Assembly: GCA_965240325.2 (NCBI GenBank)
Contig: OZ251231.1
Span: 1,550,001 to 1,614,000 of the forward strand
DNA from: Rebecca billardiae RCC1528
Lineage: Eukaryota; Protista; Haptophyta
DNA: 64,000 nucleotides
Reading direction: 5' to 3'
Positions 50,455 to 58,770 of the stretch are shown here, one piece after another. Both the position numbers and the translations under genes were made by a program. The stretch's first letter is position 1, and every line of letters begins with the position of its first letter. The notes below the pieces were generated by a model, which worked only from the letters and a program-made list of their open reading frames with translations, had not been told where the DNA came from and did not search any database.

Positions 50455-50840
50455 CGGGCGTCGAGCGGGGCGCGAGTCATTGCGAATGAGCTCGGCGGGG
50501 CCAAAGCTGCCGGCATTGAGCGTGCCGACGAGTGGCCTGCGTGATGACGGCGACCACTTTGGTCTTTGCGACGACGATGATGCCACGGCGGATGACACCG
50601 TTCGACAGAATGGCGAGAGCGCGCGCACAGACTCTTCGCTTGATGCGCCATTCCACACTGGCAGCCGCAGACCCTGCCGTCGTCGAGTGTGCTACCGTAC
50701 CCCTAGGCTGTCAGCTAGCCTTAGTCGTCGTAGTACACTTGTAGCTAAAACAGATCCAACCTCATCGAGGCGTAAGACTACTGTACAGTATGATACACTG
50801 TGACACACAATACTGGTCCCGGGCCAGCGCGATCGCCGCG

Positions 50841-53800
50841 ATGGCTGCCGCCTCGGCGGGCGACATTGCCATCTTCGCGCAGGCGCTGCAGCAGAGGCTA
50901 GGCCTTAGGGTCGATGTCGTCGAGTTGACCCCGCCGCCAGACGGCGCAGCGCCCCTCACGTCGCCCTGCGGGCTCATTGCGCTCCAGCCGTTCGCGCCCG
51001 GCGGCACGCGCGTGTTGCTTCTGAACAAGTGCTCGCCTCTCGTTGCGCGGCTTGCGGATCTGCACGCACGCGGCGACGCGGAGCTCGCGCTCGAGCTGGG
51101 AGAGGCGATTGAGGCCACTGGCTCGTTTCCGAACCAAGGCGTCGACCTCGAGCCCGCCGTACGCTGGAACCGCATGATGAACTGCGGCAACGCGCTCGCT
51201 TTCACCTGCCCCGTCCCGCTGAGGAAGCCGAGCCCGGGCCGTGCTGTCGTGCACGGCCGGCGCGTGCTCGTGCAATACGAGCGCGAGAGCCTGAGTGAGC
51301 CCTTTGTGGAGCGCATGGCCGACCGCTGGGCCGTCCGCGACGCCGCGCTCGCCGACGAGCTCGAGTGGGCACTCGCGCGCCGGCCGCAGCCACACGGGAG
51401 GCTGTGGAGCCTCCTGCGGCCGCTGGAAGGCCTTCTGCTCGGCACCGCGGCGGAGGGCGACGCCGGCGGCGGCGGCGCGGGCGGGCGCGAGCACGACGCG
51501 GCGGCGCGCGCGCCCGGGCATCCGGCCGAGCCGCTCCTCACCTACGCGCCGATGCTGCCTGTGCTGCTGGGCGCTGAGCGGCTGCTGGGAGCGACGCCGG
51601 CGGACGGCGGTGCCGAGGCGGGCGCGGCCGCCGGCCGCGGCGCACGCGGCGGTGCGCTGGTCGAGGCGTGCTCGCGGCTGCTTGCGACCGATCGGCTGTT
51701 CGCGCTGTCGGTGTTCTACTCGATCACCCTGATCGACCGCACGGGCACGCTGCGCGGCCCGCTGCGCACCGCCGCGCTCGACCCGCTGCCTTCTCGCGAG
51801 CTGATTGGGCGGCACGGCGCGCGCCCGCTGGCTGAGCTGCTGGAGGAGCGGGCGCGGGCGCTGTGGGCGCTCGCGGACAGAGGCGGCGCGGCGGAGGGCG
51901 AGGGCGCAGCTGCCGGGCCGTTGGAGCTGCAGGTCATGTGGAGCGGCGGGATCGACTCGACCGCCGCGCTGTGCGCGCTGATGCGTGTCGCCTCTGCCGA
52001 GCAGCGCGGCCGACTGGTGGTCGCGTGTGACGACGCTTCGATCAAGGAGTACCCGTACTTCTATTCGAGGTTCGTGCTCGGCGAGGGCGAGGGCGCGCAG
52101 CGCGCGCTGCGCGTGGAGCGCCTCGCGGGGCGCTCCGTCTCGCGCGAGGCCTTCGCCTCCCGCCGCCGCCTCAGCGTCACAGGCGAGCTGGGGGACCAGC
52201 TGTTCGGCTCAGACCTGATGGAGGCGGCGTTTCTCACCAGCCCCCCTCCGGACGGCGCTGGGGGCGGCGGCGCGGCGGGGTTCAACGCGTTCGCGGTGGA
52301 GGGCGGGCTGGATGCGCCGTGGCAGGCGACGCTGCTGCCCGCGCTCGAAGCCTGCGGCCTTCTCTGCGGCACAGCGGCCGAGTGGGAGGCTTGGGTCGCG
52401 CCACAGCTGGCCAAGGCTCCGCTACCCATCCGCTCGACCTTCGACATGCTGTGGTGGCTCAACTTCTCGTGCAAGTGGCAGCAGGTCTCGCTGCGCGTGG
52501 CGCACAACGCGCCCGAGGCGGCGGCGCTCGCGGACGGCGGCGTCGACGCGCCCGCCGCCCGGCTGCGTGTGCCCTTCGACCGCGTGCGCCACTTCTTCCA
52601 AGCGGCCGAGCTCCAAGGTGCGCGGCTGCGATGGGCGCGCCGCGCCCCCACGTGCGGCCGCGCCCGGCCGCCTGCGCACGCCCTCCTCTCAGCCGGGCGC
52701 GGCCTCGCGCACGTCGCGCCGCTCGCGCGCGCGCGCAGCGTGGGCGTGCGCGCCGCACAGCCACGCGACCAAGTTCGGCGACCGGGCGGTGTGGCGGAGC
52801 TACAAGGAGCCGCTCAAGGCGTACATCCGGGCGTGCACGGGGGACGAGGAGTACTACGCGCACAAGTGCAAGGTGGGCTCGCTCCACCGACCCACCGAGC
52901 GCCCGGCCGTCAGCCCGATGCAAGGGCTCGACGCCGCGGGGCGCGTGTTGCGATGGGGCGCTCTCTCGCTGCTGCCCGCCAACCTCGACCGCGCCGCCGT
53001 CGCGAGCGCGGTCGGCCTGCTCTCGGATGAGGCGCGCGCGGTGCTCGCGCCGGTGCAGAGCGCGGTGTGGCACCCGGCGACGCGCGCCGCGCACGTGTAC
53101 CCCTGGCCCTCCCTCAGCGGCGGCCGCAGCCCGTTCTCGGCCGAGCGCGGCGGCAGCGCACTGGCGCGCGCGGCGGTGTCGCGATTCAGCCGATCCGGCC
53201 GGCGCGCGAGCGAGCGAAGTCTGGAGGGCCTGTGCTCGGCGCTGGTGCCTGAGGAGCTGGTGCGCGGGCGCACGGTGCTGGAGCTCGGGCCGTGGCTCGG
53301 CGCGATCTCGCACTGGGCGCTCGCGCACGGCGCCGTCGCCGCCACGTACATTCATCACGATCAGGTGAGCAAACAAACACGCAGACGCGCGCGCGCGCAC
53401 CGCGCTCTGTCTGCGCGTCGCCGTGCACCGTGCGCGCCGCGCCGCGCGCGGCTGTGCGCCCGAGGGATCGGAAGCGCGAGGATTGGAAAGGGAATCGCTT
53501 TGCCCGAGTGCCACGTGGGGACGCGCGGCGCGTCGACACCCTGCGACCCGCCACGCCACGGCGCTGCGCCCCTTCCGGCGCAGGAGACGTGCGCACGCGC
53601 CTCTCAGCTGCTCCTGGCAGCAGCGGCCGCCGCGCCGCGCGCCGCCGACGTGCACTGTGCGCCGGAGCTGGAGTGGTTGTGCGGCCTCGCCGAGGGCAGC
53701 GTGGAGGTGGTCGTCGTCGCCGACGTGGTCGACGCCCACCCGCGAGCGCTGAGCGTGCTGCACGAGGCGGCGCGCGTCGCCGCGCGCGCCGTCGTCCTGA

Positions 53801-55530
53801 GCGGCGCACATGCTGACGGTGCGGTGCAAGCGCGCGCCACCCGCCGCGGCGTGCGCAGCTGAGCGAGCGAGCGCCCGCACGTGCGTGCGCTGCACGCTCT
53901 CGCGCCCGCTGCGCTGGTGGCGGAGGTAGGCGGAGCCGGGCGGCGGGTGTGGCCTCGCTGGACGGACACTGACGTGTGCACGCGCCCGCCTCCCGCCTGC
54001 CCCGTGCGCGCTGGCGCGTGTGCAGCGACGCGCGGCGGTGAGCTTCGAGAGACAAGTCTCAGAACGGTGCGCACCGCCCAGCGCGCGGCCGCGGTGGCGC
54101 AGCTGCAGCCGTCGGCGCCAAGCGCGCCTCTGCCCGGGCCCGGCGCGGCGCACGCGGGGACGGGGGCGACGGCAGCAGCAGGGCCGAGCGCGCGCGCGCC
54201 CACGGGCGCACACGAGACGCTCTCACTGTCGCGCGAGCTGTGCGTGCGCGCGCTGAGCTCGCACGGGCTTGAGTGCACCTCCGTCAGCCTGGCGCCACCG
54301 TCGTCGGGGGCGGCGGCGCGGACGGGTGCCGAGCGCGGCGTGCCCTCAGCCGATGCGACGGACGGCGTCGATGCCGCCGTGGACGAGTACTCGCACGTCG
54401 CGCGTGGCGACGTGCTGCCCCGGCGCTTCCTCCTCCGAGCAGAGCGCAGTGAGCCGGCGGCGGCGGTGCCCATGCCAACGGCGGCTACAGCCAGCACGGC
54501 AGGCTCGGCCGCGGCCGAGCTGCTCGGCAGCGTGCCGCGCTCGCACGCTGCCGAGCCGTGTGCCGCGGCGGCCTCTGCCGACGGCCCGGCCGCCGACGCC
54601 GCCCATGCCGCCGCGCCTGCCGAGCGCAAGGCCGAGGCGAGTCGCAGCTTCCTCGTCTGGCCGCAGGGCGTGGTGGTCGGCGCGGCGGGACGCCTCGTCG
54701 GATGCGCCGAGCGCGCGGGCACCCCAGCCCATGCGCTCGAGATGCACACCTGGTCGGCTGCGCGGCCCTGGTCGGGCGGCTCAGTGGGCGGCACCGCCTT
54801 CGGATTTGCGTTCTTCCCACCACCCGACGCGGCGGCGGCGGCCGAGCCGCCGGCCGCTGGGCGCGCGCTCGGCTCGGCTGCCGCCACCGCCGGCCCGGCC
54901 GGCCCCGCCCAGCTCGCCCACTCCAACGGCGCTCACACGGACGCGCTCCGCCCCGGCATGTACTTTAGCGCAGCTGGCGAGCTGAGCGTGCGCGGCGGTG
55001 CGGGCGGATTCGTGATTGTCGCGCCGCAATTCCACGGCCTGCACGCGCTCGGGGGCCCGATCGAGCGCCGCGGGCGGCTGCCCTACATAGACGGCTGCAC
55101 CGACACGCTGCTCGTGCCGCCGCCGCTGCTCGGCGACCCCTGCCTCAACCACCTGCACTTCCCGCCGGCGACGGTGCAGACGCTGCACACGCACCCGTCC
55201 GCGCGCGCGGGCTGCGTGGCGCGCGGCCGCGGCACGTGTGTGTACGACGGGAGCGGCCGGGCGCTGGGCGATGCGGATGGCATGCCGCAGCGGGGCGCGC
55301 TGGCACGCGCCCCGCTCTTGCCAGGCAGCGTCTTCATCATCCCGGCCGGGCTGCTCCACGCCTTTGAGACCGACGATGGGTGCAGCATGGACGTCATCGC
55401 CTACCATCCAGACTCTGATTTCGGGCCGACGCCCTCCGCGCACCCGATGATCAACCGCACCATCATCAACGGCATGTCGGCATCGCTCCTCGTGCAGCAG
55501 GCTGAGTGTCAGCAGTCGCAACGTCAATGA
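50841..55530 (+). CDS. Multidomain enzyme: unknown N-domain + PP-loop (asparagine synthase-like) + class I SAM methyltransferase + cupin; introns 52618-52738, 53365-53583, probably 53819-54025
   Basis: VMWSGGIDSTAAL, SVTGELGDQLFGS, DMLWWLNFSCKWQ, YKEPLKAYI; VLELGPWLGAISHWALAHGA; YIDGCTDTLL..GDPCLNHLHFP..QTLHTHPS..LHAFET..VIAYHPDSDFGP..HPMINRT. Intron phases checked; the third intron is least certain. Confidence 0.75.
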
Positions 55531-57144
55531 CCGCGTTCCGCGGTCCTTTTCCGTAGAACGAACGTAGTTCGGGGCCCGCGGTGGCGGTGCACCCTCCGTC
55601 GCAGTCGTCCCGTACACGTGTAACTAGACTCCATCCAGCGGCGCGCCGCCCCAGCGCCGCGCCGCCGCCGGCGTGCGCCGAGTGTGGATGTCGGTCGTCG
55701 GCCGAGCTGCCCTCATCACAGACGGCCCTTACCTGACCCCCTGCGCGTGCGCGACGGCCGACAGGCGGATGCGACTCGGCGTGATCGACGCACGAGCGCG
55801 ACTCTTGCACGCCAGGCCACCGGCGGAGCTGACTGACAGCCAGGGAGCCGGACGGCGCGGGACCGCGCGGATTCGACCGTTCGTTCGGGCCTGCCGCTGA
55901 CCGTCGTCGCCGCGACGCCAGCAGCGCAGGAGTAGATGATCTGCAGGTCAGTAGGGTTCGACCTGCGCGCCTGCGCGACGGCCGACAGGCGGGCGCGAGG
56001 CGTGAGCGACGCATGAGCGCGACTCTACGTGCACACCAGGCACCACGCGGCCGAGCTGACTGACCGCGAGCCAGGGAGCACGGTGCGAGCAGCCATGCAG
56101 CACCGGTGCTTGCGCGCGCCGCGCGTGCACGGGGTGACACACCTCGGTCAGGCTCGGCACGCGTCGCAGAGGCACGGCCAGCTCTGGGCACGCCAGGCGC
56201 CCAGGCCACGCGGAGCTGACAGCCACGGGGAGCCGACGGCGCGCGGGGCCGCGGCCAGTTCCGAGTTCGACTTGCGCCTGCTCTGAAGAAGAGTTCTGGG
56301 AGACCCTGGCGGAGAGGCATGGCAAGGGGGGCGTGTGGTGAAGTCGGAGACTCCGAGATCGATCAGTCCGGCATCATGCGCCGCTGCCCCCGAGCTTGCG
56401 AGAGCCCGAACACAGGGCGGCGGCTGCGGCGGCGGCGGCGCGGCCGCGCGCCGGCCGGCCGCGCAGGCATCGACAGGGCGCGGCAGGGGCGTGCGGAGTG
56501 ACTAGTGAGCGGGCACGAACGCGATGTCGACGGCCGTCGGGACCCGCCGCAGACGCGCGCTCCAGGCGCCACTCGGCACTTGCCACGCGCACCTGCCCAT
56601 CGAGCGCCCCCTTGCGGACCAACCAAGAGTCGTCGAGGCTCGCTCGCCACCCCAGCAGAAGAAACCTGCACAGCACGTCGTCCTTGCGACGACGGCAGGT
56701 TTTGAGCTCGCCAGCTCGGTAAGTCAGTGACTATGGAATGGGCTGGCAACGAATAGCTGCGCGGGTATTTTCAATAAGGCTTGCGGGTTTTAGACTCTAG
56801 ATACCAACCGCCGCGAAGCCAAGTTCATATTCATCAAGGCGGAGGCAAACTATCACACATGAACGAGAGTCTACCCACAAAATCGCGCTCGTAACGAACC
56901 GTTACGTTAATGTCACGTCCAGCTGACGTCCAGATCGCACTTTACTTAAGGGAATGAGCTGGACGCGCTTATTTTCGGCCTAATAGACCTCTCTATGCGA
57001 TCTCAAAAACTCGAAACTCGGTCTCCGCCAGCCCTAAAAATCGCCCCCCGTCCCTTTTTTCTTGATCAAAGATCTTTTTGAAACGTGGTTCGGGCCCGCT
57101 GGTGCGGGCTCCACGCTGCGCGCTCCGCCCTGCACCGCGGGCCA
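55528..57144 (-). mobile_element. Non-autonomous element, copy D
   Basis: Family termini; near-identical to copy E. Confidence 0.92.
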
Positions 57145-57150
57145 TAATAA

Positions 57151-58770
57151 TGACCGCGTTCCGCGGTCCTTTTCCGTAGAACGAACGTAGTTCGGGGCCC
57201 GCGGTGGCGGTGCACCCTCCGTCGCAGTCGTCCCGTACACGTGTAACTAGACTCCATCCAGCGGCGCGCCGCCCCAGCGCCGCGCCGCCGCCGGCGTGCG
57301 CCGAGTGTGGATGTCGGTCGTCGGCCGAGCTGCCCTCATCACAGACGGCCCTTACCTGACCCCCTGCGCGTGCGCGACGGCCGACAGGCGGATGCGACTC
57401 GGCGTGATCGACGCACGAGCGCGACTCTTGCACGCCAGGCCACCGGCGGAGCTGACTGACAGCCAGGGAGCCGGACGGCGCGGGACCGCGCGGATTCGAC
57501 CGTTCGTTCGGGCCTGCCGCTGACCGTCGTCGCCGCGACGCCAGCAGCGCAGGAGTAGATGATCTGCAGGTCAGTAGGGTTCGACCTGCGCGCCTGCGCG
57601 ACGGCCGACAGGCGGGCGCGAGGCGTGAGCGACGCATGAGCGCGACTCTACGTGCACACCAGGCACCACGCGGCCGAGCTGACTGACCGCGAGCCAGGGA
57701 GCACGGTGCGAGCAGCCATGCAGCACCGGTGCTTGCGCGCGCCGCGCGTGCACGGGGTGACACACCTCGGTCAGGCTCGGCACGCGTCGCAGAGGCACGG
57801 CCAGCTCTGGGCACGCCAGGCGCCCAGGCCACGCGGAGCTGACAGCCACGGGGAGCCGACGGCGCGCGGGGCCGCGGCCAGTTCCGAGTTCGACTTGCGC
57901 CTGCTCTGAAGAAGAGTTCTGGGAGACCCTGGCGGAGAGGCATGGCAAGGGGGGCGTGTGGTGAAGTCGGAGACTCCGAGATCGATCAGTCCGGCATCAT
58001 GCGCCGCTGCCCCCGCGCTTGCGAGAGCCCGAACACAGGGCGGCGGCTGCGGCGGCGGCGGCGCGGCCGCGCGCCGGCCGGCCGCGCAGGCATCGACAGG
58101 GCGCGGCAGCGGGGGCGTGCGGAGTGACTAGTGAGCGGGCACGAACGCGATGTCGACGGCCGTCGGGACCCGCCGCAGACGCGCGCTCCAGGCGCCACTC
58201 GGCACTTGCCACGCGCACCTGCCCATCGAGCGCCCCCTTGCGGACCAACCAAGAGTCGTCGAGGCTCGCTCGCCACCCCAGCAGAAGAAACCTGCACAGC
58301 ACGTCGTCCTTGCGACGACGGCAGGTTTTGAGCTCGCCAGCTCGGTAAGTCAGTGACTATGGAATGGGCTGGCAACGAATAGCTGCGCGGGTATTTTCAA
58401 TAAGGCTTGCGGGTTTTAGACTCTAGATACCAACCGCCGCGAAGCCAAGTTCATATTCATCAAGGCGGAGGCAAACTATCACACATGAACGAGAGTCTAC
58501 CCACAAAATCGCGCTCGTAACGAACCGTTACGTTAATGTCACGTCCAGCTGACGTCCAGATCGCACTTTACTTAAGGGAATGAGCTGGACGCGCTTATTT
58601 TCGGCCTAATAGACCTCTCTATGCGATCTCAAAAACTCGAAACTCGGTCTCCGCCAGCCCTAAAAATCGCCCCCCGTCCCTTTTTTCTTGATCAAAGATC
58701 TTTTTGAAACGTGGTTCGGGCCCGCTGGTGCGGGCTCCACGCTGCGCGCTCCGCCCTGCACCGCGGGCCA
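57151..58770 (-). mobile_element. Non-autonomous element, copy E (head-to-tail with D, spacer TAATAA)
   Basis: Differences from D that I could see: a 3-bp indel and one substitution. Confidence 0.92.

Follow-up and report, generated by a model that had tools for sequence, protein, structure and literature searches.

Can one gene of a haptophyte encode several enzymatic steps that phages and bacteria distribute over separate genes? The question arises from a region of Rebecca billardiae RCC1528 (assembly GCA_965240325.2, contig OZ251231.1), at positions 50841-55530 of an analysed stretch of 64,000 nt (contig positions 1,550,001 to 1,614,000, forward strand; hereafter the window). A preliminary description, made from the letters alone, had proposed that after removal of three GT-AG introns one frame links an unrecognised N-terminal domain (N-domain), a PP-loop adenylating domain, a methyltransferase and a cupin. 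Comparison with relatives shows the region to be one predicted intron-containing eukaryotic gene, whose multi-domain enzyme product has 1380 aa. Sequence comparison, colinear order and genomic neighbourhood moreover show each of its catalytic domains to be homologous to separate neighbouring genes in phages, prophages and some bacteria. As a whole, the locus is probably best explained as a gene for one multi-domain enzyme with phage-homologous parts, in which a ligase and the cupin would form the working core.

Gene structure

Exon breaks were placed from the sequence and then each checked against relatives. The resulting gene model and its predicted domains are as follows.

50841-55530, plus strand: whole gene, 4 exons and 3 GT..AG introns, 1380 codons plus stop
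50841-52617, plus strand: exon 1, ATG at 50841
52618-52738, plus strand: intron 1, 121 nt, GT..AG, phase 1; missing from locus L001 and intronless relatives
52739-53364, plus strand: exon 2
53365-53583, plus strand: intron 2, 219 nt, GT..AG, phase 0; L001 has an intron at the equal position
53584-53818, plus strand: exon 3
53819-54025, plus strand: intron 3, 207 nt (a multiple of 3), GT..AG, phase 1; holds an in-frame TGA at 53860-53862
54026-55530, plus strand: exon 4, stop codon 55528-55530
50841-51689, plus strand: N-domain, aa 1-283; conserved in eukaryote-type relatives only
51690-53106, plus strand: PP-loop adenylating domain, aa ~284-715; split by intron 1
53182-54447, plus strand: class-I methyltransferase-family domain, aa ~741-1020; split by introns 2 and 3
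54448-54642, plus strand: Ala/Pro-rich low-complexity linker, aa ~1021-1085; site of a CmoA-like domain in the relatives P0036, P0037, P0049 and P0016
54643-55527, plus strand: cupin domain, aa ~1086-1380
55186-55188, 55192-55194 and 55357-55359, plus strand: three His codons, putative cupin metal ligands; Gln and Arg beside them invariant

The spliced coding sequence of 4143 nt translates into 1380 aa with zero internal stops, and all four parts (N-domain, PP-loop, methyltransferase-family and cupin domains) lie in one plus-strand gene. The window has a GC content of ~70%, and within it the region has the character of eukaryotic coding DNA. GC at third codon positions is 0.83-0.93 and exceeds that at second positions in all exon blocks, even where exon 4 begins with low-complexity sequence; in intron 2, GC is flat over the three codon positions. 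The motifs are found where the preliminary description had placed them: SGGIDS at aa 368-373 (51942-51959), TGELGDQLFG at aa 447-456 and HTHPS at aa 1267-1271. LLHAFE follows at aa 1322-1327.

An in-frame ATG at 50790, 17 codons upstream (50790-50840), is an alternative start. The choice between the two is left undecided by the relatives, since the alignment starts at residue 12 of the 50841 model. At the other end, ~1.25 kb at 55526-56779 (AATGACCGCG...) recurs at 57149-58405, 1623-1626 bp downstream. This repeat begins 2 nt ahead of the stop codon of the gene and the left flanks of the two copies differ. The first ~945 bp are 100% identical between the copies and are followed by a 3-bp offset. 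Either a genuine segmental duplication, of a 3' flank or of a mobile element, or an artefact of assembly could account for it. Neither Rfam nor a search for tandem repeats returned anything in the window or the region.

One gene or two

The frame through three introns is confirmed by the spliced model together with its end-to-end match to the relative P0034, a single BLASTP high-scoring segment pair (query 12-1368, subject 10-1262, E 1.5e-159). P0034, with the same domain architecture, is a 1270-aa uninterrupted open reading frame (ORF); the 40.8-kb contig that carries it has sparse genes of eukaryotic type. All three junctions are gapless locally in this alignment (ELQ-A-WAC versus LECWAC at junction 1, HHDQ-ETCARA versus EVQPDFCARA at junction 2, AHAD-ATRGG versus VHTNATRKG at junction 3, 53818|54026). 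Moreover, L001 (Logan run SRR30664515, protein P0001, 46% identity) shows the identical domain order on one strand of a GC-rich contig. It lacks intron 1 but has introns 2 and 3 at matching codon positions, and its intron 3 donor (GACG|GTGCGG) is identical to that of the window.

The four domains share one ORF not only in P0034 but also in P0038 (1365 aa), P0040 (1275 aa) and P0045 (1569 aa). These intronless relatives support the single chain by comparison, not by RNA. P0194, which clusters with P0040, comes from a 37.6-kb contig, again with sparse eukaryote-type genes. The architecture varies in other members: the N-domain is truncated in P0044 (1165 aa), a CmoA-like domain is added to the four in P0036 (1812 aa) and P0037 (1647 aa), and P0049 (1334 aa) combines PP-loop, methyltransferase, CmoA-like and cupin domains without the N-domain. 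At a third eukaryote-like locus (L116/L117) a 1101-aa ORF that runs from the N-domain through the PP-loop into the first half of the methyltransferase is located just upstream of P0016, a 779-aa ORF with the methyltransferase C-terminal half, a CmoA-like domain and a cupin; one GT..AG intron lies between them. Among 1.84 billion representative proteins exon 1 has 658 relatives at E<=1e-3 (best 8e-134), so the gene is not a product of chance. Judged from these alignments, the window protein belongs to a widespread protist family without a family name. The preliminary description, most of whose interpretation holds, had spoken of an undescribed system. We found no paper that describes this architecture or the PP-loop/cupin pair of phages treated below. 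The protein is not unique.

Two genes would be the alternative. The first would end at TGA 53860-53862 and encode the N-domain, the PP-loop domain and a truncated methyltransferase, followed by a separate cupin gene starting, for example, at a Met codon near 54470. The protein collection contains the 549-aa ORF 53881-55530 as a gene called in bacterial style (P0013), and at ~75% GC long stop-free frames occur by chance. The bacterial-style ORF list holds two ORFs in the same frame because the length of intron 3 is divisible by 3 and the intron contains the in-frame TGA. As intron 3 splits the methyltransferase-family domain, a stop at this TGA would halve it: the conserved C-terminal elements (PS..L...M...GF; P.RFFLR) are encoded in frame directly downstream. 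Splicing 53818|54026 yields a sequence that matches intronless P0034, and the donor is the one conserved in L001. Methyltransferase and cupin share an uninterrupted ORF in P0034, P0036, P0038, P0040, P0045 and P0016. Boundary-like AT-richer stretches lie at ~50700-50800 and past 55530, with no such dip around 53860. Two genes are thus very improbable, and we continue with the single gene.

The PP-loop domain

WSGGIDST and VTGELGDQ.F are invariant in an alignment across eukaryote, phage and bacterial members. The stand-alone relative P0007, which has 338 aa and shares 35% identity with the window protein, was modelled with AlphaFold2 (AF2; predicted local distance difference test, pLDDT, 72.8). 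Foldseek placed human and E. coli asparagine synthetase, carbapenam synthetase, beta-lactam synthetase and TsnB9 on top, then LarE, all as weak matches (E 4.5e-4 to 5e-3, template modelling (TM) score 0.32-0.47). A PDB profile search with the PP-loop alignment returned LarE, TilS, GMP synthase and NAD synthase, at the PP-loop motif only. Based on SGGxDS and the modelled Rossmann-like fold, the domain can be assigned to the PP-loop ATP pyrophosphatase (adenine nucleotide alpha-hydrolase) superfamily.

Its family was not found in the profile libraries. Pfam and NCBIfam at E<=1 gave no match for exon 1 or exon 2, Pfam PF00733 (Asn_synthase) none for P0034:280-700 or P0036:330-890, and PHROGs no significant PP-loop match. 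CmoY, the AsnB-like ligase of Synechococcus phage S-B43, was considered and rejected: hhalign (A1 versus SpCmoY, L124:47774-48586) reached a probability of 11.6% over 22 columns, covering the PP-loop only. SpCmoY itself matches Asn_synthase at 1.7e-14, whereas the window family does not. By these profile comparisons the PP-loop family is neither CmoY nor a member of Asn_synthase. The preliminary description had regarded the protein as not an ordinary AsnB. This holds, as there is neither an Asn_synthase match nor a recognised glutaminase domain, with the modelled fold being closest to asparagine, carbapenam and beta-lactam synthetases.

A second eukaryote-type PP-loop clade (P0081, P0084, P0092, P0093, P0113, P0152) carries the motifs WSGGIDTT and TGDPADML(F/M)G and has other partners, including N-terminal membrane segments, Gly-rich tails and, in P0093, a CmoA-like domain. 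In P0113 a putative ubiquitin-like domain and RING finger can be made out by eye.

The N-domain

The N-domain is kept in 14 eukaryote-type sequences, with invariant residues scattered throughout. Pfam, NCBIfam, PHROGs and PADLOC leave it without a significant match, as does a PDB profile search. An N-terminal Cys (N-terminal nucleophile, Ntn) glutaminase was likewise not matched in it by the sequence profiles of Pfam or PDB, and the stand-alone phage PP-loop members (338 aa) come without any glutaminase domain.

Three candidate counterparts were rejected. Neither the ~200-aa partner protein encoded beside phage PP-loop genes nor the N-terminal half of 564-568-aa phage proteins is homologous to the N-domain (hhalign probability <1% for both, with small and enlarged alignments). 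Neighbouring prophage proteins of 197, 231 and 108 aa gave zero tblastn matches to the N-domain or the methyltransferase domain of the window.

The cupin domain

Q100, H103, H105, R109 and H160 (numbering of window:54880-55527) do not vary among 39 sequences. Modelled with AF2, the domain reaches a pLDDT of 89.5, and Foldseek returned many cupins at E 4.7e-6 and lower; a PDB profile search gave 4.6e-5. Pfam Cupin_2 scored 19.6 bits and thus below its gathering score (cutoff 27.2). The nearest structures are RemF cyclase, SbzM, hydroxynitrile lyase, oxalate oxidase and quercetinase. With its putative His metal ligands and a beta-barrel in the model, the domain is assigned to the cupin superfamily. 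General scans gave no family match to a 2-oxoglutarate (2OG)-Fe(II) oxygenase, a class for which no dedicated test was made; the window motif is HxH...H, not HxD/E...H.

A close cupin homologue (P0020, L114:10001-12418, 53% identity) is fused to a condensation domain of nonribosomal peptide synthetases (NRPS) and a carrier protein. The surrounding bacterial cluster contains an adenylation enzyme, a free carrier protein and two methyltransferases, without a PP-loop gene.

The methyltransferase-family domain

The preliminary description had named a Rossmann methyltransferase using S-adenosylmethionine (SAM). Pfam, NCBIfam and PHROGs left the window pieces unmatched, and the assignment comes from homology to relatives that match Methyltransf_11/12/25. 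Over its whole length the window domain is homologous to the N-terminal domain of the phage/bacterial cluster c63, which lies above the Pfam thresholds of Methyltransf_12/25/23/11; L103 matches Methyltransf_12/25 and P0034 Methyltransf_11. Two features of class-I enzymes, a Gly-rich motif I and an acidic residue that ends strand 2 and binds the ribose of the cofactor, are lost in the window. The Gly-rich loop is altered (GPWLG, within VLELGPWLG), the Glu after strand 2 (E69), present in 12 of 12 aligned family members, has given way to His, and Ser stands in place of another conserved Glu. The window transferase domain is thus probably inactive or altered.

RsmD-like and RlmI-like enzymes rank first in a PDB profile search with the domain. 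NCBIfam CmoB models are among the top matches (E 1e-7 for L103, 5e-4 for P0034), far below cutoff. The strongest library match, better than every Pfam methyltransferase family, is mad2 of a methylation-associated defence system in PADLOC (E 2e-22 for L093:6593-8053 and 1e-7 for P0034:736-943).

CmoA makes carboxy-SAM, and in phage S-B43 CmoX uses it to carboxymethylate cytosine C5 in DNA (5cxmC), to which the AsnB-like ligase CmoY joins glycine, yielding a glycine amide (PMC12783734). No CmoA-like sequence was found anywhere in the window by tblastn. In relatives (P0036, P0037, P0049, P0055 and P0016; loci L059, L093, L095 and L103) the association exists, and the CmoA-like domain matches TIGR00740 (E 1e-24 to 1e-26) along the entire model, though below the equivalog cutoff, and PDB 4GEK at 6e-16. 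The window domain is of the kind fused to the CmoA-like synthase in these proteins, which points to carboxymethyl transfer rather than the methylation step proposed initially, in a domain that looks degenerate in the window.

Relatives in phages and bacteria

As suspected in the preliminary description, stand-alone versions are mostly viral or bacterial. The PP-loop protein of ~340 aa has 525 tblastn-confirmed relatives in IMG/VR viral contigs, from which 79 distinct loci were fetched, and 28 relatives among 185,579 bacterial and archaeal species genomes (one genome per species); one of these 28, the Xanthomonas albilineans copy, belongs to a Mu-like prophage. Besides phages and prophages, the hosts of the family include some bacteria (Bdellovibrionota and candidate-phyla-radiation lineages). 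A phage-type member searched by tblastn against 50,697 GenBank phages found Pseudomonas phage Cygsa01 alone, so that cultured phages offer hardly any access to the family.

Between them, the phage and bacterial loci contain the three catalytic domains, as well as the CmoA-like domain of the relatives, as separate neighbouring genes. The PP-loop is present in 111 of 112 tblastn-positive loci and a homologue of the window cupin in 64. Leaving aside eukaryotic L001, the cupin homologue is found near the PP-loop gene in ~60 of 110 phage/bacterial loci, nearly always within 1-3 kb. A prophage cupin shares 44% identity with that of the window (E 5e-42). In L059, L093, L095 and L103 a methyltransferase homologue either adjoins a CmoA-like domain or is fused to it. 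Most PP-loop genes follow immediately on a gene for a ~200-aa helical partner, whose clusters c3, c21 and c14 are mutually homologous (hhalign 87-95%). The anti-phage defence library PADLOC had no match for the PP-loop protein, the cupin or this partner; only generic 2OG and mad2 methyltransferase matches were obtained.

The contexts are diverse. In prophages of Xanthomonas, Comamonas and Undibacterium the genes lie between Mu gp45-48 baseplate and lysis genes, followed by a 2OG-Fe(II) oxygenase. In contigs of the SU10-adaptor type they are found amid tail-fibre, gp38-like adhesin, virion-structural and tail-lysozyme genes, and in Cygsa01 past the baseplate wedge. A 236-kb contig has them adjoining DNA polymerase, and metagenome-assembled genomes (MAGs) of Bdellovibrionota and Saccharibacteria beside rhodanese, AMP-binding, alpha/beta-hydrolase and beta-propeller genes.

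Some loci deserve separate mention. In the Xanthomonas albilineans Mu-like prophage (L002:9415-14956), the stretch from gp48 to holin reads partner (197 aa), PP-loop, three small ORFs, cupin, 2OG-Fe(II) oxygenase (2OG-FeII_Oxy_3) and DUF5675, and no recognisable tail-fibre ORF lies in it. Partner/PP-loop pairs recur 2-3 times per locus in a Saccharibacteria MAG (L103:5281-16125) and in L042, L093 and L095; some of these have two adjacent PP-loop paralogues from separate branches of the tree. Cygsa01 (L113, PP179332.1 11421-13570) has two genes annotated as 'tRNA-specific 2-thiouridylase MnmA' past baseplate and tail genes. One of them is a distant member of the PP-loop family (24% identity, E 3e-9), and the name is probably an over-annotation triggered by the PP-loop motif.

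In an unrooted tree of the PP-loop domain the eukaryote-type sequences form one clade (Shimodaira-Hasegawa-like approximate likelihood ratio test, SH-aLRT, 99) with the window as sister to P0001. The second eukaryotic clade (WSGGIDTT, TGDPADML) adjoins the first, and both lie within a far broader phage/bacterial diversity. The simplest reading of this topology is one acquisition by eukaryotes. The direction of transfer is not proven, since the tree is unrooted. The earlier suggestion of a fused operon is upheld: cupin and PP-loop genes are neighbours in the loci counted above and a methyltransferase homologue joins in four.

Proposed mechanism

In the mechanism we favour, the PP-loop domain would use ATP to adenylate a carboxylate and then join it to an amine, generating an amide or a ring in the manner of AsnB-type chemistry. 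In the fuller relatives (1334-1812 aa) the CmoA-like domain would make carboxy-SAM and the class-I transferase domain would add a carboxymethyl group, which would give the ligase its carboxylate handle in the way known from the phage enzymes CmoA/CmoX/CmoY. The cupin, with its His-x-His...His motif and invariant Gln and Arg, may perform a metal-dependent oxidation, hydroxylation or isomerisation on the same substrate. For the window copy we propose ligase and cupin as the probable working core and the transferase domain as a probable scaffold, because the CmoA-like domain is missing and transferase residues are lost; the same pair is also kept in most phage loci.

Several points weigh against this mechanism. 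The structural resemblance to AsnB-type enzymes is weak (TM 0.37-0.47, E ~1e-3), Pfam Asn_synthase does not recognise the PP-loop family, and to CmoY the family is similar solely at the PP-loop motif (hhalign 11.6%). The transferase domain is not specifically CmoB-like in PDB profiles or NCBIfam. Methyltransferase and CmoA genes are present in only 4 of ~110 phage/bacterial loci, so the carboxymethyl handle is not the general substrate of the PP-loop/cupin pair. With both genes so rare, and this branch of the pathway lost in the window, the pair must also use a carboxylate that pre-exists in its substrate. The genomic contexts are mixed, ranging from tail-fibre/baseplate modules over a DNA polymerase neighbour to clusters resembling secondary metabolism. 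Finally, the activities of all domains are predictions from homology and fold, and the single mRNA is deduced from comparison.

Candidate substrates

Our leading guess is not a free metabolite but a polymer- or carrier-bound group, such as a base in a nucleic acid or a residue in a protein or peptide. Modification of a pyrimidine or other base of DNA or tRNA/RNA by carboxymethylation, PP-loop amidation and cupin hydroxylation or oxidation, a phage hypermodification of genome or tRNAs co-opted by protists, is one tentative candidate. CmoA/CmoX/CmoY acting on phage DNA is a direct precedent (PMC12783734), and the known carboxy-SAM users CmoB (tRNA), CmoX (DNA) and the C-terminal domain of microcin-C-like MccB all target pyrimidine nucleobases. 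The jumbo-phage locus L081 has a partner/PP-loop pair beside DNA polymerase, and the mad2 match of the transferase (E 2e-22) provides a lead, though only that. On the other hand, the proteins have no recognised nucleic-acid-binding domain, the transferase lies outside the C5-cytosine methyltransferase family, most loci do without methyltransferase and CmoA genes, and many are placed within tail-fibre instead of replication modules. We thus regard a base as a possible but doubtful substrate.

Those same modules would fit a second idea equally tentative in our view: modification of a protein or of a peptide- or carrier-bound residue (tail fibre, adhesin or scaffold peptide), with the ligase forming an amide or isopeptide at a carboxylate of a side chain or of the C terminus. 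Genes for the PP-loop protein and the cupin occur amid baseplate, tail-fibre and gp38-like adhesin genes (Mu-like prophages, SU10-like contigs, Cygsa01), although unrelated accessory genes are also common beside tail fibres and the contexts are not uniform. Lasso cyclases are AsnB-like. The conserved ~200-aa partner directly upstream of most PP-loop genes, at times in repeated partner/ligase pairs, might be taken for a substrate or recognition protein, but no recognisable precursor or recognition motif is present in it and the eukaryotic N-domain is not homologous to it. In P0020 the cupin shares a chain with an NRPS condensation domain and a carrier protein. In the Xanthomonas prophage the gene after the cupin encodes a 2OG-Fe(II) oxygenase of prolyl-hydroxylase type, and TglE/TglF use carboxy-SAM on a peptide-bound thiol (PMC10989515). 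Synthesis or conversion of a free small molecule, be it a secondary metabolite or a compatible solute, without macromolecular substrate appears unlikely. The nearest structures of the cupin are small-molecule enzymes, an NRPS-linked cupin exists, and AMP-binding, alpha/beta-hydrolase and rhodanese genes lie near the Bdellovibrionota and Saccharibacteria loci. Metabolite pathways are however unusual inside phage structural modules and in lytic phages, and the presence of a large non-catalytic N-domain or partner speaks for a macromolecule being recognised.

The most far-reaching reading, which we offer as speculation and consider rather improbable, is that a phage-derived one-chain pathway of marine protists writes a new carboxymethyl-amide hypermodification on DNA or RNA bases, with the PP-loop/cupin pair of hundreds of phages as a second, so far unrecognised carboxy-SAM branch, or that the same enzymes modify phage receptor-binding proteins.

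Implications

Domain fusion is among the strongest computational signs of a shared pathway. The fusion links a PP-loop ligase family with 525 viral relatives, a distinctive cupin and a class-I transferase, plus a carboxy-SAM synthase in relatives, and thereby offers a pathway hypothesis for several groups, hundreds of hypothetical phage proteins, at once. It would extend carboxymethyl-handle plus amide-ligase chemistry beyond C5-cytosine methyltransferases, and past phages into eukaryotes; this chemistry as such is already known from the 2025 precedent. The locus is moreover a clear case of genes shared with phages or bacteria that in eukaryotes have come to contain spliceosomal introns, and it exemplifies how such a pathway has become fixed in eukaryotes. 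Should a nucleic-acid base or a virion protein prove to be the substrate, this would imply a natural modification not known before.

Comparison with known systems

With small metal cupins (Cupin_2: RemF, SbzM, hydroxynitrile lyase, acireductone dioxygenase) the window cupin shares the double-stranded beta-helix and His-x-His...His at E ~1e-5. It differs by extensions upstream (GRLPYIDGC(T/S)D..L) and downstream (HPDSD.GP....HPM.NRT). Cupin motif 1 usually has a Glu 3-4 residues past the HxH pair, a ligand that the window cupin does not have.

The PP-loop domain resembles the AsnB-family synthetases (AsnB, beta-lactam and carbapenam synthetase, TsnB9, lasso cyclases) in SGGxDS, in an acidic Gly-rich second motif, which in AsnB reads SGEGADELFG, and in its best Foldseek matches. 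Formation of an acyl-adenylate and then an amide would be common to both. Unlike the AsnB family, it has no PF00733 match and no recognised Cys glutaminase, its structural scores are weak, and the stand-alone form has ~340 aa.

The pathways of CmoA/CmoB (tRNA cmo5U34) and TglE/TglF (3-thiaglutamate) likewise pair a CmoA homologue with a class-I carboxy-SAM transferase, as do phage c63 and P0036-type proteins. CmoB acts on a tRNA uridine, and the C-terminal domain of microcin-C-like MccB uses carboxy-SAM on a peptidyl-cytidylate antibiotic (PMC12783734, reference 24 therein). Neither the CmoA/CmoB nor the TglE/TglF pathway includes a ligase or a cupin, and in the profile searches the window-family transferase is not specifically of the CmoB type.

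The closest parallel is CmoA/CmoX/CmoY. Both systems are phage-borne and would combine a carboxy-SAM synthase and a SAM-fold transferase with a subsequent glutaminase-less, AsnB-like ATP ligase; in P0036, P0037, P0049 and P0016 the CmoA-like domain, transferase and PP-loop ligase are united in one chain. Whereas CmoX is a C5-cytosine methyltransferase, the transferase of the window family has a generic class-I fold. The window family uses a different ligase family and adds the cupin and the N-domain, and the window copy itself is without the CmoA-like domain and has a degenerate transferase domain. Taken together, the comparison indicates that the window-family system works like CmoA/CmoX/CmoY in outline but stands outside those families.

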